Notes: generated by a model not told the origin, from the sequence alone. DNA of 64,000 bases from Diplonema japonicum (GCA_964019335.1 OZ025705.1:248001-312000); one strand, 5' to 3'. Counted from the stretch's first letter, positions 26,174 to 51,869 are shown. A program made the numbers and translations.

Positions 26174-29100
26174 TCAACGTGAAAACAGCGAAGTGCAGCA
26201 AGCATTGCATCCGTTGCAGTAGTTAGGAGTGCAGACTTCATTTTTCCCACAAGGGCTGATGGCGCATGGGCTGACGGGGCACTTCACAAGGTTTCCGATG
26301 ATGCACCTCCCCTTGCAGTCCCTGCACTCCCCACCCTCGCAGGGGCACACCTTCCCGAACCCGCTGCTTATGATGGTACCACCACAAGGGAAGTTCTTCC
26401 CATCACCGATGCTGCAGACCCACTGCCCAGAGACCGCACAGCACCTGTGTCCTTCAAAACAGATCGGGTTCCCGTACATCCCAGGCTCCTTCAGAGGATC
26501 GCAGCACTTGTCTTCCTCAGGGCACGAACACTCGCCTGCGCCGCTGGCGTCCTCCTTCCACCTGCACGCCCGTCCACCCTCCATGCAGTAGTTGTTCACA
26601 CACTTCTTCTTGTCAACAAACATCTTGCACTCCTCAGCCTCTGGGCAGAAACACTCACCATTACCGTCCGATCCCTCTTTCCATTTGCAGTTCAGATCCT
26701 TATCGGGGCACATCTGTCTCTTGCAGAGGTCATGGTTTTTTATGTCCTCGCAAAGAACCTCAGGTGCTGGGGTGTCGTTGGGGCAGAAGCACTTCCTGTT
26801 CTCCCACTTGCACTGCATCTTCTTGTCAGGGCACTCGCTGTGGACGCAACTCTCCTCGTCCTTTATCTCCTCACAACGGTCCACTGGGGCAGGGGTGTCC
26901 TCGGGGCAGAAACACTTCCCATGTCCAAGCGAGTTCTCGGTCCACTGGCACTTCATGTCCTTGTCGGGGCATTTCATGTTGACACACTGCTTTTTGTCCT
27001 GAACTTCTTCACATCGCTCAACAGGTGCTGGGGTATTCTCAGGACAGAAACACTTTCCATTTCCAAGCGAGTTCTCAGTCCATTGGCATTTCATGTCCTT
27101 GTCAGGGCATTTCATGTTGACACATTGTTCCTTGTCTTGAACTTCTTCACATCGCTCAACAGGTGCGGGTGTATCCTCAGGGCAGAAGCACTTACCGTTA
27201 CCTAGTGAGTTGGTCTTCCACTGGCACTTCATGTCTTTGTCAGGACACTTCATGTTGACACACTGTTCCTTGTCTTGAACTTCTTCACATCGCTCAACAG
27301 GTGCAGGGGTCTCCTCAGGGCAGAAGCACTTTCCATTTCCAAGCGAGTTTTCGGTCCATTGGCACTTCAAGTCTTTGTCAGGGCACTTCATGTTGACACA
27401 CTGCTTTTTATCGTGAACTTCTTCACATCTCTCCACAGGTGCGGGGGTATCCTCAGGACAGAAACACTTTCCATTTCCAAGCGAGTTCTCAGTCCATTGG
27501 CATTTCATATCCTTGTCAGGGCATTTCATGTTGACGCACTGTTCCTTGTCTTGAACTTCTTCACAACGTTCAACAGGTGCGGGTGTGTCCTCAGGACAGA
27601 AGCACTTACCGTTACCTAGTGAGTTTGTCTTCCACTGGCATTTCATGTCTTTGTCAGGGCACTTCATGTTGACACACTGTTCCTTGTCTTGAACTTCTTC
27701 ACATCGCTCAACAGGTGCTGGGGTATCCTCAGGGCAGAAGCACTTTCCATTACCAAGCGAGTTCTCAGTCCACTGGCATTTCATGTCCTTGTCAAGGCAT
27801 TTCATGTTGACACACTGTTCCTTGTCTTGAACTTCTTCACATCTCTCAACAGGAGCCGGGGTGTCCTCAGGGCAGAAGCACTTCCTGTTGGCCCACTTGC
27901 ACTTCATCTCCTTGTCAGGACACCAACTGTGAAAGCATGCCTTCTCGCTTACAATATCTTCACAACGTTCAACAGGTGCGGGGGTGTCCTCGGGACAGAA
28001 GCACTTACCGTTACCTAGTGAGTTGGTCTTCCACTGGCACTTCATATCCTTATCAGGGCATTTCATGTTGACACATTGTTCCTTGTCTTGAACTTCTTCA
28101 CATCGCTCAACAGGTGCGGGTGTATCCTCAGGGCAGAAGCACTTACCGTTACCTAGTGAGTTTGTCTTCCACTGGCATTTCATGTCTTTGTCAGGGCACT
28201 TCATGTTGACACACTGTTCCTTGTCTTGAACTTCTTCACATCTCTCAACAGGTGCTGGGGTATCCTCAGGGCAGAAGCACTTTCCATTACCAAGCGAGTT
28301 CTCAGTCCACTGGCATTTCATGTCCTTGTCAGGGCATTTCATGTTGACACATTGTTCCTTGTCATGAACTTCTTCACATCTCTCAACAGGTGCGGGGGTC
28401 TCCTCGGGGCAAAAGCACTTTCCATGTCCAAGCGAGTTTTCAGTCCACTGGCACTTCAAGTCTTTGTCTGGGCATTTCATGTTGACACACTGCTTTTTAT
28501 CATGAACTTCTTCACATCTCTCAACAGGTGCGGGGGTGTCCTCAGGGCAGAAGCACTTTCCATTTCCAAGCGAGTTTTCAGTCCACTGGCACTTCATATC
28601 CTTGTCAGGGCATTTCATGTTGACACACTGTTCCTTGTCATGAACTTCTTCACATTGCTCAACAGGTGCGGGGGTGTCCTCGGGGCAAAAGCACTTACCG
28701 TCGCCAAGAGAGTTTGTCTTCCACTGACATTTCATGTCCTTGTCAAGGCATTTCATGTTGACACACTGTTCCTTGTCTTGTACTTCTTCACATTTCTCCA
28801 CAGGTGCGGGGGTATCCTCAGGGCAGAAACACTTACCGTTACCGAGTGAGTTTGACTTCCACTGGCACTTCATGTCTTTGTCAAGGCATTTCATGTTGAC
28901 ACATTGTTCCTTGTCCTGAACTTCTTCACATCGCTCAACAGGTGCTGGGGTATCCTCGGGACAGAAGCACTTTCCGTCGCCAAGAGAGTTTGTCTTCCAC
29001 TGGCATTTCATATCCTTGTCAGGGCACTTCATGTTAACGCACAGTTCCTTGTCCTGAACTTCTTCACATCTCTCAACAGGTGCGGGGGTGTTCTCGGGGC

Positions 29101-33776: not shown

Positions 33777-34472
33777 TTAGTTGCTGATCTTGACGCATTG
33801 TGGGGCGTAGTGGCACCAAGACAAGCACCTCGCCCAGTGCGAGTTCTGCTGGTAGCACGACAGACCAGCCTCGCAGCAGTTGGGGTTCGTGAGGCATCCT
33901 TGGTACGTACCAAGTCTGCGGGCGCAGGTGTCGGGAGAAGGCGGGCTGTTCCCGCTGCTAGAACTGCTGCTGCTAGAGCTGCTTGAACTGCTGCTGCTAG
34001 AGCTGCTTCCACTGCTGCTGGAACTGCTGCTGCTCGAGCTAGAACTGCTGCTGCTGCTGCCGGAGCTAGAACTGCTGCTGCTGCTGCTGCTCGAGCTAGA
34101 ACTACCACCACCGCTGCTGCTGGAGCTGCTTGAACCACTGCTGCTGGAGCTACTGCTGCCTCCACTGCTGGAGCTGCTGCTGCTTGAACTGGAGCTAGAA
34201 CTAGAGCTGCTGCTGCCACTGCCTGGGGTAGGGGGGGTCGGAGGTGTTGGGGTCGGAACAGGAGCCGGCACCGTTCCCGCCATGTCAGGGCACCACGTCG
34301 ACCAGTTCCACTCGCAAGTGCTCTTGCTCCCCCCACCTCCCCAGCAGGGGTCAGACCACCCCCCAGTCCTGAAGCATGGCTCCTTCTTATCAATGCAAAC
34401 CTGACACTGCGCCACAGTCTGTCCGGAGACACTAGCCGCGAGCAGCAGCAATGCAACAATCATTTTCATCAT
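33777..34472 (-). CDS. Secreted non-catalytic protein: 6-Cys module + Pro/Thr and poly-Ser linker + 8-Cys CBM1-like module (231 aa)
   Basis: Signal peptide. N- and C-terminal modules align with the termini of the GH18 at 50385-51869 (both end ...ISN*). No catalytic domain. Confidence 0.85.
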   Translation of the reverse strand: MMKMIVALLLLAASVSGQTVAQCQVCIDKKEPCFRTGGWSDPCWGGGGSKSTCEWNWSTWCPDMAGTVPAPVPTPTPPTPPTPGSGSSSSSSSSSSSSSSSSSGGSSSSSSSGSSSSSSSGGGSSSSSSSSSSSSSSGSSSSSSSSSSSSSSSSGSSSSSSSSSSSSSSSSSSGNSPPSPDTCARRLGTYQGCLTNPNCCEAGLSCYQQNSHWARCLSWCHYAPQCVKISN

Positions 34473-34832
34473 TCTGACCGAACCTAAGCTACAAGGGTGG
34501 GGTTAAAAGGGAATGGCAATTAAAACGAGATAATATAGGTTTCAGCAAGACATCACAAAAGGATGAACGCCTTTCTAAAAGGTGTTCCAAATAAAAGGAA
34601 GGTGGTATAAAAATACTTTTGCATCAAGGGTGGACCAATATCCACCGCTCGACATTCGTACCTTTGCACCCATAATGGACCAGCTAGAGATGAATAGGGT
34701 GGAAGATAGAGAAGGCCGTCTTTGGAGACCACATGAAAGGATGAAACAATCACGATCACGATTTGTGGTGGTGACGACGAACATTCGGATATATTAATTA
34801 TTATTATTATCATTATTTTCCCCTTCACACAT

Positions 34833-35141
34833 TCAAAGCTTTGTCGCGACCACAGCCTTGATCTTCCCATCCTCAATGGTGAAGGTTTCCTTCGCCTTCA
34901 GTGTGAGGAGCAGCATCTTCGCCTTCATCGTGCGGGTGAACTGCTTCCCGTCGGCGGACGCTTCGGGCTCCGAATGCCCGTAGAAGTCAGGCATGTCACT
35001 CAGAAGCTGCTTCCTCAAGGCCCCCTTCCCATTCGCCTCAAACTTCGGGTTCTTGAAGTGCACGTCTTCCGTCATCAAGCTCAGCATCCCGTCAACGTCC
35101 TTCGACTTCGTGAACTTCGTGTACTGCGCGATAACCTCCAT
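34833..35141 (-). CDS. Small SnoaL/NTF2-fold protein, copy 1 (start probably MEVIAQ; alternative ATG at 35192)
   Basis: DVDGMLSLMTEDVHF...G...LR and a terminal FTIEDGKI pattern typical of SnoaL-like domains; GC3-rich codons. Confidence 0.7.
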   Translation of the reverse strand: MEVIAQYTKFTKSKDVDGMLSLMTEDVHFKNPKFEANGKGALRKQLLSDMPDFYGHSEPEASADGKQFTRTMKAKMLLLTLKAKETFTIEDGKIKAVVATKL

Positions 35142-35507
35142 GTTTGCGATTGGTGTTTGTGGGGCTGCAGATGGGGGTGGGGGGGTTTGCATTTAAAGAA
35201 TGCTTTTGCTGCCAAAAAATAAAATAAATCAATAAAAGTAAAACCAGGGGGGGGGGGGGTAAGTACCTCACTCTTGCTTGTGACGAGGGGGACAGGGTGG
35301 GTGGGGGGTTAGAAACTATATAAAAAGAGGGCTGCAAAAGCCGTAGCTGTTGCTATCCACTCTTTCTCTTGTTTCAAAATCAAAGATAAGTTTAAAGACG
35401 GGGGAAGAGGAGGGACTCTTTCCTCCTCGAAAAAAACAACTTTTTTATCTACAATTGCGGGGGGGGGGGGGGGGGGATAAAGAAAAATAAAAGGGCACAG
35501 AGAGGGC

Positions 35508-35786
35508 TTATTTCCCAGGGAACTGAGCGTTCTTCTGCTGCTCAAGGAGTTCCTGGAACTTCTGCTTGAAGTGAGCGGAGTGGTCCCTCATCTTCTTGTT
35601 GAACTTGTCGGTGTGCTCCTTGATCATCTTCTCGAACTTGTCGTAGTGCTCCTTCATCTCAGGCGACAGGGTCGACTCGTCGGGCTTGTCCGCGAAGAAC
35701 TTCTTGTTCTGCTCCTCCATCTTCTTGCTGAACTCGGCATCGAGGCGGTCGAGCTTGTCGCTGAACTCCTGGTACGTGGTGCACAT
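35508..35786 (-). CDS. KMP11: Kinetoplastid membrane protein-11, copy 1 (92 aa)
   Basis: MCTTYQEFSDKLDRLDAEF...KFFADKPDESTLSPEMKEHY...EQQKNAQFPGK. Confidence 0.97.
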   Translation of the reverse strand: MCTTYQEFSDKLDRLDAEFSKKMEEQNKKFFADKPDESTLSPEMKEHYDKFEKMIKEHTDKFNKKMRDHSAHFKQKFQELLEQQKNAQFPGK

Positions 35787-36374
35787 CTTTCTCTTTTTTC
35801 TCTTTTTTTTTCTCTTGCTTTGTTGTTTGTAAGTAGCAGCCCTGGAAAGAAAAATAAGAAAAATATGAATAAGTAAATAAATAGAAGGAATAAAAAACAA
35901 AAATAGAAGCAAGATGTAGATCTATCTGCACTCGAGACAACATTATGAGCTTCACGAGCTCCCGCCGACCCAACAGCACACGGGAGAGTGATTCAGCAGC
36001 TCCTTCACATGTGTCCAAAATATTCTGAGAGGGAGAGAGAGAGAGAGGAAGGAGAATTCAGTTAGATAGAAGACCTAACAATAGAAAGAGGGAGAGTTCT
36101 TACAGCTTCTTTGCGGTTTTCCCTTCATATAAGGTGGTGCAAAGGAAAGGGCTATTAAAACAAGACAAAAAAAAAAGGAGTTAGCTGAACTAATTTAAAG
36201 AGTTTAAAAGGGTTCAAATAGAAAGAGGAGGAGAAGATGAAGACAAGATAAGTATATTCGGAGTAGGAGGAGGAACTAGACCAAATGAAATTAAAAAAGT
36301 ATGCAAACTGTCCTTGAAGGGAACCTGCAGTATGTGACAGGATCGCCGCACGACAAAACAACTCATCTAGGAAA

Positions 36375-36529
36375 GAAAATGCTGGACGGCAAACTGTCCG
36401 GGTTTTGTCGCATTCGGGAGTGTGTCCGTCCGGCATTTTTCCGTTCGGCATTAAAATTTTCTTGGACCCTACGCACTGTGCCTATCCTACCAGCCCCTAT
36501 GTAAACAAGTTAACTTTTTTGTTTTACAG
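36375..36529. repeat. Degenerate relative of the 269-381 hairpin/MITE remnant
   Basis: aaaatgctggacgg...tgtccgggtttt...ccgtccggcatttt hairpin with the same layout; ends gttttacag|ta at 36529. Confidence 0.45.
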
Positions 36530-36789
36530 TAATAAAGAAGAGAGAGAACACTAAAAAAAAGGAGAAAGGACAAATCTTTGTAAGACGTCCCCTCCCCTCT
36601 TTGATATAGAAAACCAGCAATGTTATATATGGAAGGCAATGAGGTTTCCTTTTCACGTTGGAGAGATAAGAAAGTTATGAAACACGTGTCAGTGGCTAGC
36701 CCCTTTCTATTAACGAAGGGGTGTAAGCAAACACACACACAAGTTTCTTTCTTTCTTTCCTTCATCTTTTTTTTTAATTTCATCTTCTT

Positions 36790-39486
36790 TCAGCGGGCTC
36801 CAGATGGGGGAGCGAAGCACGTGCATGTCTTGGGAACACCCGTCCCCCCGTTGTTGGGGCCACTCGGCTTCTTGCACATGGGTCTGTCGAGGCAGCCCTT
36901 CGAGGCGTCGTAGTGGCACTGCGAGGAAGCCCCACAAGCCGCCTCGTCCTGTTTGAGCGAGCACTGCTCCCCCGCCGTGACCACGAAAACAACGAAGTGG
37001 AGGAGGTCCTTGGTGATGGGGACTTCCACGGGAGGTGCCCCTGCCGCCACCTCCAGCTTGAAGATCGCAGTCGGGAGGGGCTTCCTGTCGGAGGGTGCCC
37101 CAGGGAAGGTGGGGACGTACTTCGGACCACAGCTGCCTGCCTCGAAGCCTGCGTTCAGAAGCCCCTGCGGAAGACCCCCGTTCCTAGTGCTGCTGCACGG
37201 GGGGCAGTTGTGGAGCACCACGTAGAAGGTGCAAGGGTCGCTCGCCTGGTTTGCAGGGCAGGTCACCTTCAAGGACATCCCCTTCCTTCCGTGTGCTCCC
37301 ATGTGCGCCGTCGACCCCGCCAGCCACGAGGGTATCCCCGTCCACATCTGCCCGCTCACGTCGTCCTTCACAACAGAAGAAGACCCTTGTTGTCCCCCCG
37401 CAGCTGCAAGCGGCAGCGTCATCGCCATCACAACAGGGTCTTGATCCGCCGCCGGTGGCACCTTCACCGTCACCAAAGCAGGGCCCCCAACAAGCTCCAC
37501 CATAGGGGCGGCGGCGGAGGGACACTTTGCTGAGATGTCGTAGATCTCGAGGCTCTTCCCGAGGCCGCTGAGGAAGAGGTGGTCTCCTTCCACAAGGAGC
37601 GCGAGGACCATCGCAACCTCGTCCTTCGCGAGGAGAGTGAAGGTCCCCGTTGTCGCTGTCTCCTCCAGCACAAAGACGCCGTCGCCGCCCGTCCCTCGAC
37701 ACGCAAGGTACAACCTCGACCCGCGGAAGTGCATGTCTTGGCAGTTGGTCGCCTCGGTTGGGGCGTTCAACGGTTGCTGGGAAAGCGAGGCAGCGTCGGC
37801 CTTCCAAAGCTGGTCGGACACCTGGCTCACGTACAGAGAACCCTCATGGTACACAATCCGCCCAAAGCCGAAGTCGGGGATGGCCTTCATCGCGTGGAGC
37901 GACGGGTTCGCAGGATCCGACACGAGGAAAGTGCTGATCCTCCAGTGGGACGTGGAGGCCTTCGCTGCGTACACCTTCCCGTCGTGGTGGACCATGTCCA
38001 TCGTCTCCAGGGAATCGGTTTCCGTTGTGAGTGCTGGTGTGTACATCCCCACCAGGTTCAAGGACCCTTTCGTGAGCACGTAGAAGGACTCCAGTCGAGT
38101 CATCTCGTTCATGTAAGCAACGTAGATGTGGTGGGCCGACTCCGCAATCCCACGGTCATTCCTACGGTTCGCGTCTTGTGGGGCGAAGGTGTTCAACACT
38201 GCAGGGACCGCAGGATTCTGCAGGGTGTACACAACCATTGCGTGGCGCCAAGCAACGTACAGCAGGTCCCCACTCACCAGTACAGCACGTGCATTACCGT
38301 GGGCCCCTTTCGGGATCTCCCCCAACTCCACCGGGTTCGCCTTGTCCGCCACATCCACAACCCTCACCTTCCCCCCCAGCTCTGTCCCATACACATAATC
38401 TCCGAACGACGTCAAGTCCATCATCGCATCAAGAGCCCCCGGTCCTGTTTTCCCAACAAAAACAAGCTCCATGGGGGTACATCCTCCGGACGAGATCTCG
38501 TAGACCTGGAGGGTTTTCCCGAGGCCGCTGAGGAAGAGGTGGTCTCCTTCCACAAGGAGCGCGAGGACCATCGCATCCTCGTCCTTCGCGAGGAGAGTGA
38601 AGGTCCCCGTTGTCGCTGTCTCCTCCAGCACAAAGACGCCGTCGCCGCCCGTCCCTCGACACGCAAGGTACAACCTCGACCCGCGGAAGTGCATGTCTTG
38701 GCAGTTGGTCGCCTCGGTTGGGGCGTTCAACGGTTGCTGGGAAAGCGAGGCAGCGTCGGCCTTCCAAAGCTGGTCGGACACCTGGCTCACGTACAGAGAA
38801 CCCTCATGGTACACAATCCGCCCAAAGCCGAAGTCGGGGATGGCCTCCATCGCGTGGAGCGACGGGTTCGCAGGATCCGACACAAGGAAAGTGCTGATCC
38901 TCCAGTGGGACACGGAGGCCCTCGTTGCGTACACCTTCCCGTCGTGGTGGACCATGTCCATCGTCTCCAGGGAATCGGTTTCCGTTGTGAGTGTCGGTGT
39001 GTACATCCCCACCAGGTTCAAGGATCCCTTCGTGAGCACGTAGAAGGACTCCAGGCGAGTCATCTTGTTCATGTAAGCAACGTAGATGTGGTGGGCCGAC
39101 TCCGCAATCCCACGGTCATTCCCACGGTCCGCGTCTTGTGGGGCGAAGGTGTTCAGCGCTGCAGGGACCGCAGGATTCTGCAGGGTGTACACAACCATTG
39201 CGTGGCGCCAAGCAACGTACAGCAGGTCCCCACTCACCAGCACACCACGCGCCTTCCCGCGGGCTCCTCTCGGGATCTCCCCCAACTCCACCGGGTTCGC
39301 CTTGTCCGCCACATCCACAATCTTCAAATTCCCCCCCAGCTCCGCCCCGTACACATAATCTCCTAACGACGCCATGTCCACCATCGCATCAAGAGCCTGC
39401 CCCGGTCCTGTCCCTGCCCCTAGCTTCTTGAGACCCTGGCTTCCCACGCAGAGAGCTGCGAACAGCAACATCTTCAACATCAGCAT
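36790..39486 (-). CDS. Secreted LVIVD-repeat (beta-propeller-like) protein with two 320-aa internal repeats and a Cys-containing C-terminal domain (898 aa)
   Basis: Signal peptide; LKIVDVADKANPVELG / VVYTLQNPAVP / FLVSDPANPSL blades; 960-bp internal direct repeat (for example 37561 matches 38521). Confidence 0.8.
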   Translation of the reverse strand: MLMLKMLLFAALCVGSQGLKKLGAGTGPGQALDAMVDMASLGDYVYGAELGGNLKIVDVADKANPVELGEIPRGARGKARGVLVSGDLLYVAWRHAMVVYTLQNPAVPAALNTFAPQDADRGNDRGIAESAHHIYVAYMNKMTRLESFYVLTKGSLNLVGMYTPTLTTETDSLETMDMVHHDGKVYATRASVSHWRISTFLVSDPANPSLHAMEAIPDFGFGRIVYHEGSLYVSQVSDQLWKADAASLSQQPLNAPTEATNCQDMHFRGSRLYLACRGTGGDGVFVLEETATTGTFTLLAKDEDAMVLALLVEGDHLFLSGLGKTLQVYEISSGGCTPMELVFVGKTGPGALDAMMDLTSFGDYVYGTELGGKVRVVDVADKANPVELGEIPKGAHGNARAVLVSGDLLYVAWRHAMVVYTLQNPAVPAVLNTFAPQDANRRNDRGIAESAHHIYVAYMNEMTRLESFYVLTKGSLNLVGMYTPALTTETDSLETMDMVHHDGKVYAAKASTSHWRISTFLVSDPANPSLHAMKAIPDFGFGRIVYHEGSLYVSQVSDQLWKADAASLSQQPLNAPTEATNCQDMHFRGSRLYLACRGTGGDGVFVLEETATTGTFTLLAKDEVAMVLALLVEGDHLFLSGLGKSLEIYDISAKCPSAAAPMVELVGGPALVTVKVPPAADQDPVVMAMTLPLAAAGGQQGSSSVVKDDVSGQMWTGIPSWLAGSTAHMGAHGRKGMSLKVTCPANQASDPCTFYVVLHNCPPCSSTRNGGLPQGLLNAGFEAGSCGPKYVPTFPGAPSDRKPLPTAIFKLEVAAGAPPVEVPITKDLLHFVVFVVTAGEQCSLKQDEAACGASSQCHYDASKGCLDRPMCKKPSGPNNGGTGVPKTCTCFAPPSGAR

Positions 39487-39937
39487 CTTTTCTGTCTTCT
39501 TTTTTTTCTTTTGGCGTTTGTCGCTTTTTTTCTCTTTTTTCAGTTAAAAAACCTGTGGTGGAAAGTTGCGATCAAAGGACCATAAGAAAAGGATTAACAA
39601 TATTCAAAGAAAATAGGAAAAAGTAGCAACAAGAGGCCATAATAAGTATATAAAAAAAGGGGGCTGCAAAGACATAGCCTTGCTCCACTATTTTCTTTGT
39701 TTCAAAATCAAACGTTGGGTGACAACTCGGCCGTTGAAAGAAGATAAAAAAAAAAGATAAATTTAAAATAAAAAGAAGAAACACACAAGAAATAAAAGCG
39801 CAGGTAAGACACGTTCATAAAGACAAAGAGAAAGAAAGAAAAAAAGGGGGGTGTTCAATCGCTACTGTCAATGGTCAAGGAAAGAAAAAGGAGACATAAA
39901 TTAGAGGAAAGATCTTTTTTCTTTTTTTCTCCTGCTT

Positions 39938-41425
<1,488 letters not shown>

Positions 41426-41429
41426 TCAA

Positions 41430-41463
<34 letters not shown>

Positions 41464-41890
41464 AATAATATTAATAAGTTCGACACTCAAGGCTAGCGCT
41501 TTCGCGCTCACCCGTTTGTCTTGCAGTTTTCAAAAAAGAAAACGAAAAGAAATAAAAGAGAGAAAGACAGGGACTCCAAAGGTCTAAACAACATCATTGC
41601 TAACCCACTTTTCCCCCTTTCACTTTTGCGTGATTCTTAACTCGTGTAGAATGGAACTGTTGTATATGTGAAATGCTATGCACTGTCATCACACGAAGTA
41701 CTGAATAAAGAGGGCTGCAAAAGCCGTAGCTGTTGCTATCCACTCTTTCTCTTGTTTCAAAATCAAAGATAAGTTTAAAGACGGGGGAAGAGGAGGGACT
41801 CTTTCCTCCTCAAAAAAAAAATAAAATACTTTTTATCTACAATTGCGGGGGAGGGGGGGATAAAGAAAAATAAAAGGGCACAGAGAGGGC

Positions 41891-42169
41891 TTATTTCCCA
41901 GGGAACTGAGCGTTCTTCTGCTGCTCAAGGAGTTCCTGGAACTTCTGCTTGAAGTGAGCGGAGTGGTCCCTCATCTTCTTGTTGAACTTGTCGGTGTGCT
42001 CCTTGATCATCTTCTCGAACTTGTCGTAGTGCTCCTTCATCTCAGGCGACAGGGTCGACTCGTCGGGCTTGTCCGCGAAGAACTTCTTGTTCTGCTCCTC
42101 CATCTTCTTGCTGAACTCGGCATCGAGGCGGTCGAGTTTGTCGCTGAACTCCTGGTACGTGGTGCACAT
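41891..42169 (-). CDS. KMP11: KMP-11 copy 2
   Basis: Identical protein. Confidence 0.97.
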   Translation of the reverse strand: MCTTYQEFSDKLDRLDAEFSKKMEEQNKKFFADKPDESTLSPEMKEHYDKFEKMIKEHTDKFNKKMRDHSAHFKQKFQELLEQQKNAQFPGK

Positions 42170-42174
42170 CTTTT

Positions 42175-42209
<35 letters not shown>

Positions 42210-43222
42210 GTTGTTTAAAGGTTGTTTGTGTTGTGTGGCCCTTTTTGTTGTCTTATTTTGGAAAGAAGAACGATTCATAGAAAACACAAAATATAAACGG
42301 ATTCATTTTTCTCTTTTCCTTCCCCCTTCCTGTCCCTGACGGCGCCAAAGGATATTCAACGGCCTGAGAGGTCGTCCGAAGGTTCAGAAGGGGGAAAGGA
42401 GAAAGGGAGAGAGGGAGGGAAAGTTTAAAAAAGTCGATGCAAACTCCGCGCGAGAGCCGCAGGCCAAAAAAAAAAAAAAAAAAAAAAAAAAGAAAGAATA
42501 AGAAAAGTCGGAGTGTATATTTTCTTAGAAAAGGGGGCCTTCTTGTCGAGTGCATGCTGGTCACACCACAAAAAAAAAGGTCTGTTTTATTTTTTTTTTT
42601 TTTCATTTTTCAAAAATAGAAAAAAGCCGCCATTTCCACGTAAAAACGATTTTCGCCTTTCATAAAAGGAAGCAGGGAAGACAGACAGAGGCAACAACCC
42701 GTTGCCGTCTGTTGTCGTGTTAAGGAAGAAAGAAATTGAAAACAAAAAAAGATAATAAAAGAAAAGAGAATTTAAAAAAAAAAAAAAGCAATCGAGGGAG
42801 AAGAATACCAGAGGGGGGGGGGGGGGGGGGGTTGAGCAAAAGACGATTGTCACAAAAGGGAAAAGAGAAAGGGTCACACATCATGGGTGAGACAGAAAAA
42901 AAAGAAGGGAAGCCAAAAAAATAAAATAAAATAAAAGAAAGTGATGAAGGAAAGCAGCTGTCCCCTGGGAATACGGGTCCACAGGGAGGAGAACACAGAC
43001 ATGTTGCGTAGCGAAAGACAAAGGCGTGACTCAGAGTCACGAAAGGTCACCCTCGCCTCACATTGCTGTGCCTCTTCAGATGGTGTGGTTCATTTGTTTT
43101 GTTTTATTTATTTTTTTGTTTTTCCTTTTAAAAAACTTTTGGCTTGTCATCCTTCATTTTTTTTTTCTTCTCATTTCTTCAATCCTCGTTTCATTTTAAC
43201 ATTTTTAGTTTTTTTTTTTCCA

Positions 43223-44137
43223 TCACCCGATGAGCTTGCACTGAGAGGCAACGTCGCAAGTCACCCTGCACTGGGCGTACCACTGGCTCTGCTGGTAGCA
43301 ACGGCTCGGTGCCTCACAGCAAGAGGGTGACGACAGGCAGCTTCCCCACTCCGCGATCTTGGGACCAGAGCAGGTGCCCGCAGGAGAAGGCGGGTTCGTG
43401 GGGACAGGTGTGGGAACAGGGGTCGACACGGGAACAGTGGACCCACCTGCTGGGGTGGGTGTGGGTGTGGGGGTGGGTGCAGGTGTGGGAACAGGTGTCA
43501 CGGTGGTGGTACTGCCACCGTTTCCATTGCCACTGCTGCTGCCACCATTACCACCACCAAAGTTGTTGCTGGCACCGTTGAAGTCAAGGTCGATGGCGTT
43601 GTAGAAGCTGGCAGAGGTGTCACCGACATCCCAGACTGCAAGGACCACGTGGTAGCCGCTCCTGGTCGGGACCGTGCAGGAGTGGGTCACCCCAGAGAGA
43701 GGAGGCTGCTACATCTCCCCGTCCACCGTGCAGAAGGGGGTCCCCTCCAAGGTCTCCCTCCCGAGAGGGTCCACCCCGTTCCACCCTTCCTTCGTGATGA
43801 AGTACCTCCAGTCCCGCGTCACGTGGTTCGCCCTGAAGGCCCACGTGAAGTCCATCGCCCCGCTGCTCACAGAGGTCTTCGCCCACCTCGTCGTCGACTG
43901 CTCGTTCAGGGGCGCCCAGGTGTCCACCCCGGCCGCAGCCACCGTCCCGTCCGCAGGGCCCGTCTCGGGGTACCGGTCCTTCCCCTCCACGCTCTGCGGC
44001 TCGTACTGCACCGCCCCGCAGTTCGTGTTCCTCTTCTGGTTGCACGACCAGCTCCTCGACGACGGGGTCACCACGTAGCCGTGCCCCTGTGCTGAGGCGA
44101 ACAGGGCGGTCACGCAGACAACAGAGCGCAGCATCAT
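43223..44137 (-). pseudogene. AA10 LPMO + Pro/Thr linker + CBM1-like module with one in-frame TAG (43711-43709); pseudogene or read-through candidate
   Basis: Colinear with the intact copy at 46686-47678; ATG-TAG-CAG here versus ATG-CAG-CAG there; frame otherwise intact (305 codons). Confidence 0.85.
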
Positions 44138-44571
44138 TTCTTTGTTGTTGTTTTTTTTTTTTTTTAAAGTGTTTTGGGGTTACAAAAACCTGGGTGCGTT
44201 GAGAGGTGGTTTTGTTAGATGGAAGTGTGTCTCGAGAGAAAAGAAAGAAGAAAGGAAAAAAAGGAACAGCAAGGTCGCATCCAGCATTCTAGAAAAGGAA
44301 AAGAACACCAACACAAACAGAAGTGGTATGAAGGATACTTCTGCATCAAAAATACTATTGCATCAAGGGTGGACCAATATCCACCGCTCGACATTCGTAC
44401 CTTTGCACCCATAATGGACCAGCTAGAGATGAATAGGGTGGAAGATAGAGAAGGCCGTCTTTGGAGACCACATGAAAGGATGAAACAATCACGATCACGA
44501 TTTGTGGTGGTGACGACGAACATTCGGATATATTAATTATTATTATTATCATTATTTTCCCCTTCACACAT

Positions 44572-44880
44572 TCAAAGCTTTGTCGCGACCACAGCCTTGA
44601 TCTTCCCATCCTCAATGGTGAAGGTTTCCTTCGCCTTCAGTGTGAGGAGCAGCATCTTCGCCTTCATCGTGCGGGTGAACTGCTTCCCGTCGGCGGACGC
44701 TTCGGGCTCCGAATGCCCGTAGAAGTCAGGCATGTCACTCAGAAGCTGCTTCCTCAAGGCCCCCTTCCCATTCGCCTCAAACTTCGGGTTCTTGAAGTGC
44801 ACGTCTTCCGTCATCAAGCTCAGCATCCCGTCAACGTCCTTCGACTTCGTGAACTTCGTGTACTGCGCGATAACCTCCAT
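44572..44880 (-). CDS. SnoaL/NTF2-fold protein, copy 2
   Basis: Identical to copy 1. Confidence 0.7.
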   Translation of the reverse strand: MEVIAQYTKFTKSKDVDGMLSLMTEDVHFKNPKFEANGKGALRKQLLSDMPDFYGHSEPEASADGKQFTRTMKAKMLLLTLKAKETFTIEDGKIKAVVATKL

Positions 44881-45244
44881 GTTTGCGATTGGTGTTTGTG
44901 GGGCTGCAGATGGGGGTGGGGGGGTTTGCATTTAAAGAATGCTTTTGCTGCCAAAAAATAAAATAAATCAATAAAAGTAAAACCAGGGGGGGGGGGGGTA
45001 AGTACCTCACTCTTGCTTGTGACGAGGGGGACAGGGTGGGTGGGGGGTTAGAAACTATATAAAAAGAGGGCTGCAAAAGCCGTAGCTGTTGCTATCCACT
45101 CTTTCTCTTGTTTCAAAATCAAAGATAAGTTTAAAGACGGGGGAAGAGGAGGGACTCTTTCCTCCTCGAAAAAAACAACTTTTTTATCTACAATTGCGGG
45201 GGGGGGGGGGGGGATAAAGAAAAATAAAAGGGCACAGAGAGGGC

Positions 45245-45523
45245 TTATTTCCCAGGGAACTGAGCGTTCTTCTGCTGCTCAAGGAGTTCCTGGAACTTCT
45301 GCTTGAAGTGAGCGGAGTGGTCCCTCATCTTCTTGTTGAACTTGTCGGTGTGCTCCTTGATCATCTTCTCGAACTTGTCGTAGTGCTCCTTCATCTCAGG
45401 CGACAGGGTCGACTCGTCGGGCTTGTCCGCGAAGAACTTCTTGTTCTGCTCCTCCATCTTCTTGCTGAACTCGGCATCGAGGCGGTCGAGTTTGTCGCTG
45501 AACTCCTGGTACGTGGTGCACAT
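45245..45523 (-). CDS. KMP11: KMP-11 copy 3
   Basis: Identical protein. Confidence 0.97.
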   Translation of the reverse strand: MCTTYQEFSDKLDRLDAEFSKKMEEQNKKFFADKPDESTLSPEMKEHYDKFEKMIKEHTDKFNKKMRDHSAHFKQKFQELLEQQKNAQFPGK

Positions 45524-45528
45524 CTTTT

Positions 45529-45568
<40 letters not shown>

Positions 45569-46685
45569 GTTGTTTAAAGGTTGTTTGTGTTGTGTGGCCC
45601 TTTTTGTTGTCTTATTTTGGAAAGAAGAACGATTCATAGAAAACACAAAATATAAACGGATTCATTTTTCTCTTTTCCTTCCCCCTTCCTGTCCCTGACG
45701 GCGCCAAAGGATATTCAACGGCCTGAGAGGTCGTCCGAAGGTTCAGAAGGGGGAAAGGAGAAAGGGAGAGAGGGAGGGAAAGTTTAAAAAAGTCGATGCA
45801 AACTCCGCGCGAGAGCCGCAGGCCAAAAAAAAAAAAAAAAAAAAAAAAAAAGAAAGAATAAGAAAAGTCGGAGTGTATATTTTCTTAGAAAAGGGGGCCT
45901 TCTTGTCGAGTGCATGCTGGTCACACCACAAAAAAAAAGGTTCAGAAGGGGGAAAGGAGAAAGGGAGAGAGGGAGGAAGGGAGGGGAAAGTATAAAAAAG
46001 AAGACTTGAACTGTATATTCTTAAAAGGGTACCTTCGTCCAGTGCAATGCAGGTCTGCACGCAACCACAAAAGAAGGTCACCCTCTTATTTGTTCTTTTT
46101 TTAAAGCCGCCACTTCCACGTAAAGACGATTATCACCTTTCATAAAAGGAAGCAGGGAAGACAGACAGAGGCAACAACCCGTTGCCGTCTGTTGTCGTGT
46201 TAAGGAAGAAGTGAAACTTGAAACAAACAAAAGGGGAAAACCATTTAAGGGTATCTGCGGTATGTCGCAGAAGGCTTAAATAATAAAGGTAAAAAAAAAA
46301 GGGAAACAAACGAGAGAGAAGATATGTCAGAGGAGGGGTTGTGTTTGGTTTTAAACAAAAGAAAAATACGATTGCCACAAAGGGGAGAAGGGAAAGGGGG
46401 CACATCAAACAAGAATCGTTGTGAAAGAAGAAGGAGAAAAAAAAAGAAAGAGGAAAGCATCATATGTGGGTCCACAGCGAAGAGAACACACAGACAGGTA
46501 AGCAGAGAGGTGGCGTGACTCGGAGTCACGAAAGGCCCACGCCTTTGCTTGATTTCTTGTGGTTCTCTTCTTGGTTGCCATCCTTTCTTTTTTTTCCCTT
46601 CGATTTCGGTTCATTTTAATGTTTGTTTTTTTTCTTGTTTGTTTGTTTCTTTTTCTTGTTTTTTTTTGCCAGCTCCTCAGCACCA

Positions 46686-47678
46686 TCACCCGATGAGCTT
46701 GCACTGAGAGGCAACGTCGCACTTCACCCTGCACTGGGCGTACCACTGGCTCTGCTGGTAGCAACGGCTCGGTGCCTCACAGCAAGAGGGTGACGACAGG
46801 CAGCTTCCCCACTCCGCGATCTTGGGACCAGAGCAGGTGCCCGCGGGAGGGGGCAGGTTCGTGGGGACGGTTGCGGTGGTGGTACTGCTGCCGCTGTTGC
46901 TGCTGCTGGTGGTGGTGGTACTGCCACCACTGCTGCTGCTGCTGCTGCCACTGCTGGTGGTGGTGGTACTGCCACCAGTGTTGCTGCTGCTGCTGCTGGT
47001 ACTACCACCACCACTGCTGCTGCTGGTACTGCCACTGCTGGTGGTGGTGGTGGTACTGCCACCACTGTTGCTGCTGCTGCTGCCACCATTACCACTACCA
47101 AAGTTGTTGCTGGCACCGTTGAAGTCAAGGTCGATGGCGTTGTAGAAGCTGGCAGAGGTGTCACCGACATCCCAGACTGCAAGGACCACGTGGTAGCCGC
47201 TCCTGGTCGGGACCGTGCAGGAGTGGGTCACCCCAGAGAGAGGAGGCTGCTGCATCTCCCCGTCCACCGTGCAGAAGGGGGTCCCCTCCAAGGTCTCCCT
47301 CCCGAGAGGGTCCACCCCGTTCCACCCTTCCTTCGTGATGAAGTACCTCCAGTCCCGCGTCACGTGGTTCGCCCTGAAGGCCCACGTGAAGTCCATCGCC
47401 CCGCTGCTCACAGAGGTCTTCGCCCACCTCGTCGTCGACTGCTCGTTCAGGGGCGCCCAGTTGTCCTTCCCAGCAGCAGCCACCGTCCCGTCCGCAGGGC
47501 CCGTCTCGGGGTACCGGTCCTCCCCCTCCACGCTCTGCGGCTCGTACTGCACCGCCCCGCAGTTCGTGTTCCTCTTCTGGTTGCACGACCAGCTCCTCGA
47601 CGACGGGGTCACCACGTAGCCGTGCCCCTGTGCTGAGGCGAACAGGGCGGTCACGCAGACAACAGAGCGCAGCATCAT
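46686..47678 (-). CDS. Lytic polysaccharide monooxygenase, family AA10 (CBP21/GbpA-like) + Ser/Thr linker + 8-Cys CBM1-like module (330 aa)
   Basis: Signal peptide cleaving before His1 (AQG|HGYV), YEPQSVEG, GPADG, second His in [30 protein letters not shown] with the axial Phe. Confidence 0.95.
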   Translation of the reverse strand: MMLRSVVCVTALFASAQGHGYVVTPSSRSWSCNQKRNTNCGAVQYEPQSVEGEDRYPETGPADGTVAAAGKDNWAPLNEQSTTRWAKTSVSSGAMDFTWAFRANHVTRDWRYFITKEGWNGVDPLGRETLEGTPFCTVDGEMQQPPLSGVTHSCTVPTRSGYHVVLAVWDVGDTSASFYNAIDLDFNGASNNFGSGNGGSSSSNSGGSTTTTTSSGSTSSSSGGGSTSSSSSNTGGSTTTTSSGSSSSSSGGSTTTTSSSNSGSSTTTATVPTNLPPPAGTCSGPKIAEWGSCLSSPSCCEAPSRCYQQSQWYAQCRVKCDVASQCKLIG

Positions 47679-48370
47679 TTCTTTGTTGTTGTTTTTTTTT
47701 TTTTTTAAAGTGTTTTGGGGTTACAAAAACCTGGGTGCGTTGAGGTGGATAGGAAAGGAGAAGGAATAAAAGGAAATAAAGAAGCCCCTCCCTCAATTCT
47801 GTACCAAAGCAAAGGAGCAAAATACAGAAAGGGGGTGAGATAGGGGGTGAGTGAAGAAAAAAAGAGAACATCTTCAACATCAGCAGCTTTTCTCTTTCGT
47901 TCTTTTTATTTTATTTTTTTTCGGACAAGAACTGTAGCAAATGGCTAAGAGGAGAAGGGGAAGAAGAAAAAGTTGGTGGTTGATGCACACCAACCAAGTT
48001 AGGGAGAAGCCAAAAGCAAAAACAAAAACAAAAGGAGTATGCTGCACACCTTGGAGGAAGAAATAAATATTTCAAAAAAAAGAAGAAGAAACCCCATTGA
48101 TCTTCCAGGATAGCCTGTGGAAGTATGGAACCAAATGAAATGAAATGAAGACCCTCCAGCGCACACACATATCGGAAAAAAATAAGAAAATCAAAAAACG
48201 GAGAGAAATAAAAGAGCGAAAGAAAGAAAGGAAGGAAAAAACCCCCAACAAAGATAGTGGGGAAGAACTTGGTGTTTTTGAGATTTAAGATTTAGTGACT
48301 CATCGGAAATTTAAACATCACACAAAAGAGAAGCGAAAAAGAAGTGTTTTATTTTTCTTTTTTTTTCATT

Positions 48371-49117
48371 TTATTGTTTGAGGAGGATGTCAGAGCAGCC
48401 CTGCTGCTTGCAGACCTCTTCCAGATTGGAGGCGTTGCTCTCGCAGGAGAGACCCTTTGCATGCATCCTGCCCAGAACAGTCGACTCGGAGAGGTAGAAG
48501 TTCGCGAAGGGTGTCATGAAGTCCTCGGAGATGCTCTTCTCGCAGAGCCCCGTCTTCATGAGGGCTGCCCGCCAGTTTTGCACCTTCGGGTAGCCGTGAG
48601 CAAAGTCGTAGCCGGTCTTCTCCTTGATGATCTGTGTTCGGTGCAGCAAAGGAAGCCAGGTCATGTCCACTGTGCTCACGGTGTCGCTGTTGAAGAACTC
48701 CGCCCCCCCAAGCACCTTCTCCACCTTCGCAAAGGCCGTCGCTATCTTCATCGTCCGCTCCCTCAACGTCTCCCCGTCACTGCTGGACTGCGCCCCGCAC
48801 TGCGGCATGTAGTTCTTGCTCCCGAGGTACCCCCAAGCCCTGTTCTGCGCCCTCTGCACGAGGCTCAGGTCCGGCTGCAGGGCAGGGTAAGCCTCCTCGA
48901 TGTACTCCGCGATCGCCTCCGACTCGAACAGCACCTCCTCCTTCTCGGTCACAAGCAGCGGCACCTGCCCGTTGGGCGAGATGTCCAAAAACCACTGCGG
49001 CTTCTCCTTCAGGTTGATGTACTCCACAACGTAAGGGGTCTTCTTCGCCTCCAGCAGGGCCGTGATCCGCTGAACGAAGGGGCAGATCTTGAAGCTGATC
49101 ACTTTTAACACCGGCAT
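48371..49117 (-). CDS. Glutathione S-transferase with catalytic Cys (omega/DHAR-like)
   Basis: ICPFVQR, KPQWFLDISPNGQVP, LFESEAIAEYI, N-capping STVD motif. Confidence 0.92.
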   Translation of the reverse strand: MPVLKVISFKICPFVQRITALLEAKKTPYVVEYINLKEKPQWFLDISPNGQVPLLVTEKEEVLFESEAIAEYIEEAYPALQPDLSLVQRAQNRAWGYLGSKNYMPQCGAQSSSDGETLRERTMKIATAFAKVEKVLGGAEFFNSDTVSTVDMTWLPLLHRTQIIKEKTGYDFAHGYPKVQNWRAALMKTGLCEKSISEDFMTPFANFYLSESTVLGRMHAKGLSCESNASNLEEVCKQQGCSDILLKQ

Positions 49118-50384
49118 TTTGCTTCTTTTTTTTTTTGTTTGTTTTTTGTTTTTCTTTTTTTATGGTGGTCTACTTTAAAGAACGTTTCCCATTAGGATAT
49201 AGTTTGTTGTGTTTTGCAGGTAAGCGGTACTCATAATCCCACTTAGGGCCACTCTTGCGAGAAAGAAACCCTAAGGTCATTGACCGACGAATTCGAAAGC
49301 AAGCTTCTAATATCCTAAATTCCTGGTTCAAGACGTGCTTCCTTTTTCTTCGGAAAGAATGCTGTTGACGGGTGGCTGGGGAGACGGCGTTAGCTGCATG
49401 AAAAAAAGCGAGTGTGGGGAATAAAATAGAAACAAGTAAAAGCGTTAAAAATCGAGAGAAAGGGAGAAGGAGGAGGAGGAGGAGAAGAAAAAGAAAATTG
49501 TACCAAAGAAGAGAGGCGGGGTTGTGACTTTCAAACAATATCCTTTATTAGAACGTTACAACCCCTCTTCTTGTTGTACGTACTCTTATTTTTTTTCTTC
49601 GACCCGGGGAGAATCGCCTGAAAGGGCAGTCCAAGCTACACCTGAACCTGCCCAAAACGGGAAAAAAGTGGATCAAAACGCGGTTAGGCGGTAGTGTTAG
49701 AAAAAAAAGTTTATTTTTGGTTTTTCCATTCTCTCTTTTTTTGATGTTTCCGTGTTTTTTTTTTTTTTTTTTTCTTCTTCTTTGGTCTTACGCTCAAACA
49801 AGGGATGAAGATGATAAGGCGGACCTTCATTGCTCTTGCTCGGCACAAAGAAAAGGAAAAAAAAGAAAACAAGGGAAGTAGAGAAGGAGAAGACTACCAT
49901 TTACCTATTATACATGCAGTAGAAAATTTTGGTATTGCAGTGCCTGCCACATGTGTTGTTGATTTGACAAGAGCCTAACGAATACTAGATAAAAGCAACA
50001 AAAGAAAAAGCAGGAAAGAGGGGGAAAATGCAAGAGGAAAGCAAAGACACCAATAACAGAGAAGGTAGAGGTATGTGTAGGTATCCAGCAACTCTTTTTT
50101 TTTTTTTTTTTTTTTTTCCATCTTTTCCTTGTTTTTTTCTCTAGTTTAACAGTGAACCGATTCTCGATCTCACAAAAAAAAAAAAAAAGAAAAAAAAAAA
50201 AAAAAAGAGAGGGAAGGAAATATGTAGTGAAACAAAGGAGCCTTTTCCCAAAAGAGCACGTGACAAACGTGTCAGGGTCTGTGAGGGACGCTCCTGAAAG
50301 AAAGGAAATGTTTAGGGCAATTTCACATGTTACACAAACGCAACGGGGCCACCCCCCTCTTGTTCGTCGCGTTGTGCCAGCAGT

Positions 50385-51869
50385 CTAGTTGCTGATCCTC
50401 TCGCACCCCTCTGCATTGTTGCAAGCAGGCAGGCACCTAGCCCAAAACTGGCTTTCTTTGTAGCACGACAGACCAGCCACACAGCAGTTCGGTTTCGAGA
50501 GGCATCCTTCCCACTGATTAAACCTGGTAGCACAGCTAGTAGAGGTGACTGGAACAGGCTCGGGTGTCGGGACAGGAGTTGGGACAGGGGTTGGGACAGG
50601 AGTGGGAACAGGGGTCTCCTCCATAGTGGTGTCCTCGGGAGCAGCATTGCTACCATTGTTGTTGCTGTTCTTGTTGTTGGCGCTGCACCCCCTGGCAGGG
50701 CTGACGGAGGCACTGACCGCCTGGGACCAGGCCCCGTTGGTGTCGTGAAGAGCGACCCAGAAGAAGGCCCCCCCGTTGCAGGGGTACTCCTTGTTCAGGT
50801 CATTCATCACGCTGACAGCCCGCTGCGCGTTGCTGTTGGAGTTGGTCCCCCCGCAGTCGCTGATGCAGAAGCCGAAGACGATCCTCGTCGGGTCGTTCCC
50901 GAGCACATCCGTCACAAGGGTCTTGAGGTGCGCCAGGGCGGGGGTGGTTCCCCCGTTGATCCCGTCCCTGTTGGGGGTCGTGATCCCGTTGTAGTACTGC
51001 GGCATGAGGAAGTCCACGGAGCTTGCTGTCTCCTTGATGACGTTGTAGTAGCCTCTCCCCTGCACGAGGTCGACGTCGATCGGGGTGTGCGTCACGATGT
51101 TGGCCCCAACGGCGAGCTTCTGCTTCAGCCCGACAGTCACCTCCTTCAAAAAGGCCTGCGCCTGTGCCCCCTTCGCGAAGGGGGACCCGTTGTGCCCGTC
51201 CTCGTAGTAGTACTCGTAGTCGATGTCCACCCCGTCGAAGCCCTGGTCCCGCGAGATGTCCACCAGTTGCTGGATCACGAAGTCCTCCTTCCCGTAGCAG
51301 TACTCCCAGCAGTCGTTCTTCCCGTCCCAGTGGCCCCCCATCCCGGCCCCGCCGAAGGACAGGATCACCTTCTTCCCAGCCGCACGCCACTTCTGCACCA
51401 GGGCGGGCTGCGGGGCGTTCTCGCACACCGGCACGGGCGTCGAGATCACGCACTGCTGGTTGCAGGTGTTCTTCGTGGGGTTATACGTGTAGGTCACCGC
51501 GAAGGACACGAGGACGTGTGTGTAGGAGCTCATCTGTGCGTCGGTGGGGCACGTCTGCCAGTTCCCGACGAAGGCCACCATCCTGTTGTCGTCGGAGGCC
51601 TGCGCAGAGGGGCCGGGCTGAGTGGCAGGCGGGGCCGGCTGCGAGGGTGTGGTCGGTGTTGTGGGTGCCATGCCCCCCCTTGTGGGGCACCATGTCGCAC
51701 CGTTTGCTGCGCACGTGCTGGCGCTGCCACCGCCTGCATAGCAGGGCTCCGCCCACTCTGGCTTGAAGCACGGTGCACCCATGTCGATGCAGCGCTGGCA
51801 CTGTGCAGCCGTCTGCCCAGAGGCACTCGCCGCGAGCAGCAGCACCAACCCGAACGCCTTCAGTGTCAT
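50385..51869 (-). CDS. Secreted GH18 chitinase with N-terminal 6-Cys module and C-terminal 8-Cys CBM1-like module (494 aa)
   Basis: Signal peptide; KVILSFGG and intact catalytic motif FDGVDIDYE; MPQYYN; Pro/Thr linkers. Confidence 0.95.
   Translation of the reverse strand: MTLKAFGLVLLLAASASGQTAAQCQRCIDMGAPCFKPEWAEPCYAGGGSASTCAANGATWCPTRGGMAPTTPTTPSQPAPPATQPGPSAQASDDNRMVAFVGNWQTCPTDAQMSSYTHVLVSFAVTYTYNPTKNTCNQQCVISTPVPVCENAPQPALVQKWRAAGKKVILSFGGAGMGGHWDGKNDCWEYCYGKEDFVIQQLVDISRDQGFDGVDIDYEYYYEDGHNGSPFAKGAQAQAFLKEVTVGLKQKLAVGANIVTHTPIDVDLVQGRGYYNVIKETASSVDFLMPQYYNGITTPNRDGINGGTTPALAHLKTLVTDVLGNDPTRIVFGFCISDCGGTNSNSNAQRAVSVMNDLNKEYPCNGGAFFWVALHDTNGAWSQAVSASVSPARGCSANNKNSNNNGSNAAPEDTTMEETPVPTPVPTPVPTPVPTPEPVPVTSTSCATRFNQWEGCLSKPNCCVAGLSCYKESQFWARCLPACNNAEGCERISN

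Follow-up and report, generated by a model that had tools for sequence, protein, structure and literature searches.

In a 64,000-nucleotide stretch of contig C58 of the Diplonema japonicum genome (the window), positions 33,777–51,869 carry two genes for AA10 lytic polysaccharide monooxygenases (LPMO1 and LPMO2), a GH18 chitinase gene and a gene for a non-catalytic binding protein (the binder). These genes probably encode a secreted, chitin-directed core that lies inside a duplicated block of C58 and reflects amplification for dosage rather than operon-like assembly. We searched the window and the genome (62.5 Mb, 132 contigs) for related genes; genome-wide gene counts are lower bounds, and signal peptides and cleavage sites were judged by eye. 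All long open reading frames (ORFs) of the window are on the minus strand, and the seven gene types that a preliminary description, made from the sequence alone, had placed within 18 kb on one strand were all recovered there. From 51,869 down to 33,777 the order is GH18, glutathione S-transferase (GST), LPMO2, KMP-11, SnoaL-like, LPMO1, KMP-11, cathepsin-L, LVIVD, KMP-11, SnoaL-like and binder; the three KMP-11 and two SnoaL-like genes were missing from that first list. The euglenozoan host named at that stage fits the presence of KMP-11 and of a cruzipain-type C-terminal extension (DUF3586), and AA10 proteins of other loci in the genome are identical to D. japonicum entries in EukProt.

Recent duplication of the C58 block

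Self-comparison of the window returns pairs of segments with 95–99% identity (43220–44203/46683–47744, 41707–42581/45063–45941 and 34609–35811/44348–45548), the last of which is 99.4% identical. Identical copies of the LVIVD, cathepsin, GST, KMP-11 and binder genes occur at C58:193–213 kb, and at C58:354–375 kb an AA10–GST–AA10–KMP-11 series is repeated three times and followed by cathepsin. Together with these two regions, the stretch forms a set of three paralogous C58 blocks that arose by recent duplication of GST–AA10–KMP-11 units. An assembled utilization locus, as first proposed, does not describe a stretch that is not unique but belongs to three recently copied blocks with KMP-11 among the copied genes. 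The duplicated blocks are not an assembly artefact, because they differ from one another by 1–5% and in gene content, and because the assembly (strain YPF1604, 62.3 Mb) is described as having been scaffolded to give 118 chromosomal pseudomolecules (PMC13598402).

The amplified zone of C58 spans roughly 230 kb (about 193–375 kb), and the rest of the window is amplified too, with at least four copies of tubulin, three of a predicted secreted protein of 1,556 amino acids and two of a P450. The 1,556-amino-acid protein is encoded at 4510–9180, 11753–16423 and 26174–30844 (minus strand). Its three genes share a polycistron with tubulin and the two P450 genes and lie interleaved among them; over multiple repeats, the protein matches the Pfam model NADase_transloc, whose description is F5/8 type C domain.

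Predicted secreted proteins of the core

LPMO2 matches Pfam LPMO_10 with 149.7 bits (cut-off of 23, profile positions 1–183) and NCBIfam GbpA with 280 bits over residues 8–192, and in the PDB it is closest to GbpA of Vibrio (E = 5e-59) and CBP21 of Serratia (E = 6e-53). It consists of a signal peptide, a GbpA/CBP21-type catalytic domain, a Ser/Thr linker and a C-terminal CBM1-related module with eight cysteines. The residues of the histidine brace are in place: the signal peptide ends at AQG/HGYV, which aligns His19 with the first residue of mature CBP21; the second conserved His and the Phe are likewise present (ANHVT against ANHIT, and SFYNAID against SFYNVID, in GbpA). Both AA10 genes of the preliminary description were found, but only one is intact. 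LPMO1 is 96–98% identical to LPMO2, and a CAG codon of LPMO2 is replaced in it by TAG (43709–43711), which the genome search also marks as ‘1 TAG’ at C58:291586–292083; LPMO1 is probably a pseudogene or the product of a sequence error.

The nearest relatives outside diplonemids are GbpA-type proteins of marine Gammaproteobacteria (52–62% identity), and AA10 genes of this type also occur in Diplonema ambulator and Rhynchopus euleeides. These comparisons suggest a horizontal acquisition of the AA10. At least 49 full AA10 genes are present in the genome.

The GH18 protein has a signal peptide, an N-terminal module with six cysteines, a small class-III-like GH18 domain, a PT linker and a C-terminal module with eight cysteines. 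Its description as catalytically intact fits the sequence: the DGVDIDYE motif is kept and the profile score exceeds the cut-off, and FDGVDIDYE aligns with LDGVDIDYE of PDB entry 6k7z. Weak side matches to EndoS and GH85-type proteins were also returned, and the name ‘chitinase’ on close relatives is the naming of their sources only. Other diplonemids, among them D. papillatum (with DIPPA_18220 and DIPPA_30791), supply these relatives first, followed by a large group of diatoms at 49–61% identity. In the GH18 tree, diplonemids and diatoms fall on two sides (81% support), and the seven D. japonicum domains in the tree, to which five genes contribute, all group in a single clade (99% support). 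The parts are therefore of mixed origin, as had been proposed, with a GbpA-like AA10 that has bacterial nearest relatives and a GH18 of diplonemid and diatom type. Genome-wide we found about 37 GH18 genes. Giant ORFs of about 2,400 amino acids with two tandem GH18 domains occur in at least ten copies, at C5:892–896 kb (L006:53–3691 and upstream ORFs) and on C11, C61, C33, C20, C111 and C98, and match a ‘GH18-GH18’ transcript of a published table.

The binder is built from a signal peptide, an N-terminal six-cysteine module, a Ser-rich linker and a C-terminal eight-cysteine module. Because the N-terminal module is elsewhere in the genome almost confined to the N-termini of GH18 genes, the binder appears to be a GH18 protein minus its catalytic domain. 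A second, identical copy lies at C58:193877–194584.

The four chitin-related proteins had been said to end in the same module, and in the alignment all eight cysteines are invariant. Its standing as a unifying targeting module is only half sustained: it is common to AA10, GH18 and binder, but it is also a generic, CBM1-related module with at least 109 matches in the genome, and its profile matches pectate lyases, GH5, AA9, alginate lyases and other proteins. None of the isolated N- and C-terminal modules scored above threshold against Pfam; the best CBM_1 match reached 13.6 bits (E = 0.063), where the cut-off is 20.6, and two of three tested modules had no CBM_1 match. A profile of 13 modules retrieves proteins with six to seven true CBM_1 repeats (E = 2e-72 and 7e-35). 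In an AlphaFold2 (AF2) model (pLDDT of 88), the C-terminal module folds into a small cystine knot that is CBM1- or knottin-like, and the model matches the CBM1 domains of CBHI and cellobiose dehydrogenase with probabilities of 0.47–0.95 but non-significant E values of 0.2–2. From profile and model, we read the C-terminal module as a putative relative of CBM1 with a different cysteine count.

AA10 linkage, LVIVD genes and bystanders

Of the 49 AA10 genes, ten have a GH18 gene no more than 10 kb away, against 0.58 expected under uniform placement, an enrichment of about 17-fold. The check proposed at the outset, whether chitin genes are commoner together than random, thus comes out in favour of clustering for this pair. 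Grouping by chance through abundance had been named as the danger: the families are indeed abundant, but AA10–GH18 proximity is still above chance. Where they are linked, the AA10 and GH18 genes of D. japonicum are separated by 2–8 kb and occur in several arrangements (identities are to the window's gene). These are GH18–GST–AA10 in the window; GH18 (57%, apparently broken)–AA10 (70%) at C58:331–334 kb; GH18 (63%)–OTU–LVIVD (45%)–AA10 (76%) on C39 and at both ends of C104; paraflagellar-rod gene–LVIVD–AA10–2,400-amino-acid double GH18 on C5, C11 and C61; and AA10 (61%)–double GH18 on C33. The window GH18 is sister to the GH18 at C58:333 kb, and the AA10 genes that adjoin the two are also nearest relatives, which fits en-bloc duplication of linked pairs. 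That second GH18 (C58:333.1–334.7 kb, L015:5142–6690), beside the AA10 at C58:331.9 kb, has split frames and a long tree branch and is a probable pseudogene.

The two families are also joined in single polypeptides. A Rhynchopus-like diplonemid encodes AA10, Cys module, GH18 and Cys module in one open frame, in five distinct proteins (P0125, P0128, P0129, P0130 and P0132) on four ENA contigs of 457–838 kb. The AA10 of these fusions is sister to that of Rhynchopus euleeides (99%) and shares 62% identity with LPMO2, and their GH18 is 58–61% identical to that of the window. Many diatom relatives of the GH18 are AA10–GH18 fusions as well, for example in Seminavis robusta (P0184) and Pseudo-nitzschia (P0243), and their AA10 has no meaningful similarity to that of diplonemids. 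Because the two AA10 lineages are unrelated, the fusion arose at least twice. Linkage and gene fusion together give good support to a functional coupling of AA10 and GH18. The main text of the Rhynchopus/Natarhynchopus genome preprint mentions neither chitin nor LPMOs.

The LVIVD protein of the window contains two tandem beta-propeller units and a conserved, Cys-containing C-terminal domain. An internal tandem duplication of 960 nucleotides (37532–38448/38492–39411) is 95% identical, and most paralogues have a single propeller unit. The family has at least 45 genes and is diplonemid-specific, with prokaryotic relatives that are only 24–29% identical. An AF2 model of a single-unit paralogue shows a propeller and a beta-rich C-terminal domain; a fold search with this model for a specific propeller match indicative of a redox partner returned generic WD40/BamB-type propellers only, a scan of metagenomes detected no LVIVD relative and a look-up of the protein in the ESM Atlas gave nothing.

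In eight cassettes, an LVIVD gene lies directly upstream of an AA10 gene, and all eight are within 20 kb of a contig end (C39:576–579 kb, both ends of C104, C5:884–896 kb, C61:493–504 kb, C11:808–818 kb, C13:12–16 kb and C105:280–283 kb; loci L001–L011 and L014). The catalytic domains of their AA10 genes differ little or not at all, and the cassettes resemble a subtelomeric gene family dispersed over chromosome ends. Two of the contig ends that bear cassettes carry a terminal (GCAAACCC)n repeat, which caps other contigs too. Arrays of this 8-mer were seen at the ends of C39 (L002) and C11 (L010), at C1:1–384, C3:999806–999965 and C4:1–328, and from position 37 of C5; a 40-mer of the repeat has 5,287 matches in the genome, against 0 for a control. 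On the plus strand, GGGTTTGC stands at left contig ends and GCAAACCC at right ends, so that the repeat is a candidate telomere sequence of non-canonical type whose strand polarity is unusual. The LVIVD protein may be an accessory factor of AA10 and GH18.

The other genes of the block (Table 1) are associated with AA10 only through recent co-duplication. The cathepsin-L and GST had been counted as parts of the cluster, a place they lose, as their proximity to AA10 is confined to the recently duplicated C58 blocks. The secreted cathepsin-L was confirmed as a gene, but its ORF as first read runs through a 129-nucleotide GT–AG intron. The intron splits QCG/SCWAFS, and the catalytic motif is restored across the junction; the Pfam and genome scans used the unspliced ORF, and the junction was read from the sequence. 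With an I29 propeptide, a C1 domain (204.9 bits) and a DUF3586 kinetoplastid-type extension, the protein is of cruzipain type, and its family has at least 64 matches in the genome.

The GST, with its CPFVQR motif and matches in the PDB to GSTO1 (E = 3e-19) and dehydroascorbate reductase (DHAR; E = 4e-17), is of omega/DHAR type. Its six copies are identical, all on C58, each about 0.7 kb directly upstream of an AA10 gene. Ascorbate is a known LPMO reductant. A DHAR-like GST could recycle ascorbate, yet this one lacks a signal peptide and all of its copies are recent duplicates. KMP-11 has 17 full copies in the genome, 11 of them on C58, where eight lie 1.6–1.9 kb from an AA10 gene. KMP-11, the SnoaL-like protein, GST and the cruzipain-like protease are probably bystanders.

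Table 1 Genes and other features at positions 33,777–51,869 of the window
Feature	Position	Strand	Evidence
Binder, predicted secreted, non-catalytic, 231 aa	33777..34472	-	ORF; no Pfam family
SnoaL-like protein without signal peptide, 119 aa, probable bystander	34833..35192	-	Pfam SnoaL_2, E 1.1e-5, just under cut-off
KMP-11, copy 1 of 3, housekeeping array gene	35511..35786	-	Pfam KMP11, E 1.3e-51
LVIVD protein, predicted secreted, 898 aa	36790..39486	-	Pfam LVIVD, 49.7 bits; internal repeat
Cathepsin-L/cruzipain-like protease, predicted secreted	39938..41401	-	Pfam I29, C1, DUF3586
Intron of cathepsin-L, 129 nt, GT-AG	40860-40988	-	Boundaries read from sequence
KMP-11, copy 2 of 3	41894..42169	-	Self-comparison and genome search
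AA10 LPMO1, in-frame TAG at 43709-43711	43223..44137	-	Pfam LPMO_10 on both pieces, searched apart
SnoaL-like protein, copy 2, identical to copy at 34833-35192	44572..44931	-	Duplicate block, 99.4%
KMP-11, copy 3 of 3	45248..45523	-	Self-comparison and genome search
AA10 LPMO2, 330 aa, intact; C-module 46686-46841	46686..47678	-	Pfam LPMO_10, 149.7 bits
Omega-class/DHAR-like Cys-GST, no signal peptide	48371..49117	-	CPFVQR motif; Pfam GST_N/C
GH18 chitinase, predicted secreted, 494 aa; C-module 50385-50540	50385..51869	-	Pfam GH18, 39.2 bits, cut-off 29.6

A published transcriptome table of D. japonicum lists ten AA10 transcripts at 150–1,574 transcripts per million (TPM), together with GH18 and GH18-GH18 transcripts (PMC10161547, supplementary file 4); for D. 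papillatum the same paper reports an absence of LPMOs (PMC10161547, supplementary file 1). Diplonemids are described in the same work as heterotrophs with large sets of carbohydrate-active enzymes (CAZymes) (PMC10161547). Among transcriptome proteins, one is 97% identical to LPMO2 and one is 97% identical to an LVIVD paralogue, and the exact GST protein is present in the D. japonicum set. In assembled Logan contigs over the stretch, depth differs between genes and spacers by up to about 1,000-fold in run X1, which is RNA-like; from contigs, neither level nor strand nor ends can be read. A loose end of 18 letters upstream of GH18 could not be identified as a spliced leader. In the literature searched, D. 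japonicum AA10 transcripts appear only as rows of a supplementary table, and we found no description of an AA10 expansion or of AA10–GH18 linkage or fusions in diplonemids; the main text of the genome report (PMC13598402) mentions neither chitin, LPMOs nor CAZymes.

Competing explanations and known systems

We hypothesize that AA10, GH18 and binder are secreted and have chitin as their substrate. The CBM1-related module would dock each of these proteins on the crystalline polysaccharide, the copper-dependent AA10 would nick chitin chains oxidatively and the GH18 would hydrolyse the loosened chains. That AA10 and GH18 act together is supported independently by their fusion in the Rhynchopus-like diplonemid and, with another AA10 lineage, in diatoms. 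Because transcription in Euglenozoa is polycistronic and gene-specific promoters are largely absent, copy number is a main route to higher expression. GST–AA10–KMP-11 units would then have been copied repeatedly, with dosage as the probable driver and with unrelated genes carried along. The AA10–GH18 and LVIVD–AA10 adjacencies would trace back to a small number of old linkages that spread en bloc, many of the copies coming to lie near contig ends.

Several observations weigh against this explanation. Most AA10 genes (39 of 49) have no GH18 within 10 kb, including a series of 13 copies on C13. The ten linked AA10 genes are not independent: they represent about five diverged arrangements, which may all go back to one or two adjacent ancestral pairs that persisted by inertia. 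The AA10 tree places every diplonemid AA10 on one side of a branch that would mark a single acquisition but has only 67% support, and its backbone is unresolved. An exact-sequence look-up of the window's proteins in the transcriptome set found the GST alone. CBM1-type modules classically bind cellulose, and cellulose or another crystalline glycan is a conceivable ligand of the C-terminal module.

A broader reading, which we regard as possible but well short of likely, makes AA10, GH18 and LVIVD together a eukaryotic chitinolytic cassette. The LVIVD protein would be a new accessory partner, in substrate access or redox supply, and the GST would perhaps feed reductant; the cassette would have spread near contig ends and inside housekeeping arrays and, in one lineage, been welded into AA10–GH18 polypeptides. 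If it is true, diplonemids would contribute significantly to the oxidative breakdown of chitin in the ocean.

Rather unlikely, in our judgement, is that the arrangement is a neutral by-product, in which AA10, GH18 and LVIVD are large, fast-duplicating families in duplication-prone regions and their adjacency is accidental. The position of all eight LVIVD–AA10 cassettes less than 20 kb from a contig end, two of these ends with (GCAAACCC)n, the near-identity of the cassette AA10 catalytic domains, the many AA10 genes without a GH18 neighbour and the interleaving of housekeeping genes (OTU, paraflagellar rod and KMP-11) would all be expected from such a process. It accounts poorly for the roughly 17-fold enrichment over random expectation and for linked pairs kept across 57–79% sequence divergence, and the two independent AA10–GH18 fusions, which use unrelated AA10 domains, favour functional coupling instead.

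The co-selected eukaryotic locus for the use of chitin–protein composites, in which all seven gene types would be functional and held together by selection, is in our view unlikely. All of its predicted secreted members lie in one polycistron, within 18 kb, the full gene set recurs at C58:193–213 kb, LVIVD genes that are 45% identical to that of the window also adjoin AA10 elsewhere, and an omega/DHAR-type GST could in principle recycle ascorbate (an idea only). However, the full set recurs at 100% protein identity, which indicates recent copying rather than independent retention, and outside C58 no gene of the cathepsin-L family (at least 64 matches in the genome) adjoins AA10, and the six GST copies are all on that contig. 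KMP-11 and the SnoaL-like gene are interleaved just as regularly, the GST lacks a signal peptide and no regulatory gain from adjacency is known under polycistronic transcription.

A mainly non-nutritional role, in attachment to chitinous surfaces (copepods or diatom fibres), in warding off fungi or chytrids, or in reshaping the cell's own surface, would suit a nearest characterized relative, Vibrio GbpA, that is a colonization factor, a non-catalytic bivalent binder and the very high AA10 copy number and published TPM, but is improbable given that the histidine brace and GH18 catalytic motif are intact, that fusion to a hydrolase indicates depolymerization and that diplonemids are heterotrophs with large CAZyme sets.

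On the dosage explanation, at least 49 chitin-type AA10 genes, linked to GH18 and, in a sister lineage, fused with it, would make some diplonemids candidates for marine oxidative chitin turnover. The family would exemplify how an enzyme gained by horizontal transfer is multiplied for dosage where transcription lacks gene-specific control. The independent fusions in diatoms and diplonemids predict a synergy of AA10 and GH18 that can be tested.

Polysaccharide utilization loci of Bacteroidetes, such as the chitin utilization locus of Flavobacterium, co-locate non-homologous chitin-active genes. Co-location is alike in the window, where adjacency above chance was found for AA10 and GH18, but a search of the window for SusC/SusD-like transport, sensor or regulator genes found none, operon logic is absent, housekeeping genes are interleaved and the origin is by duplication. 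In Ustilago maydis (PMC10617569), an AA10 is likewise encoded by a eukaryote and acts on chitin; it is a single fungal gene directed at chitin of its own wall, with no expansion, CBM1-like module or GH18 linkage described. The C-terminal module shares CCxxGxxCxxQxxWYAQC with fungal CBM1 (PF00734), and differs in having six to eight cysteines rather than four, a C-terminal extension of 13 residues that holds a further Cys pair, and chitin-active partners.

The closest bacterial counterparts are CBP21 and the GH18 enzymes of Serratia marcescens and GbpA of Vibrio cholerae, which belong to the same AA10 clade and are paired with GH18. In D. japonicum the genes are instead nuclear and polycistronic, a Ser/Thr linker and the CBM1-related module stand in place of GbpA_2, CBM73 and CBM5, the GH18 belongs to a diplonemid/diatom subfamily rather than to ChiA/B/C, and the AA10 has at least 49 copies. 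The AA10–GH18 fusion proteins share the GH18 subfamily (55–61%), and those of diplonemids also the AA10 clade, Cys modules and PT linkers; the D. japonicum enzymes, by contrast, are separate genes, and diatom fusions use an unrelated AA10 with CBM14/CBM18. Finally, tandem arrays of trypanosomatids, such as those of tubulin and KMP-11, serve gene dosage. The same KMP-11 (17 full copies) and tubulin are amplified in one direction here, but in heterogeneous units that include secreted enzymes of foreign origin.

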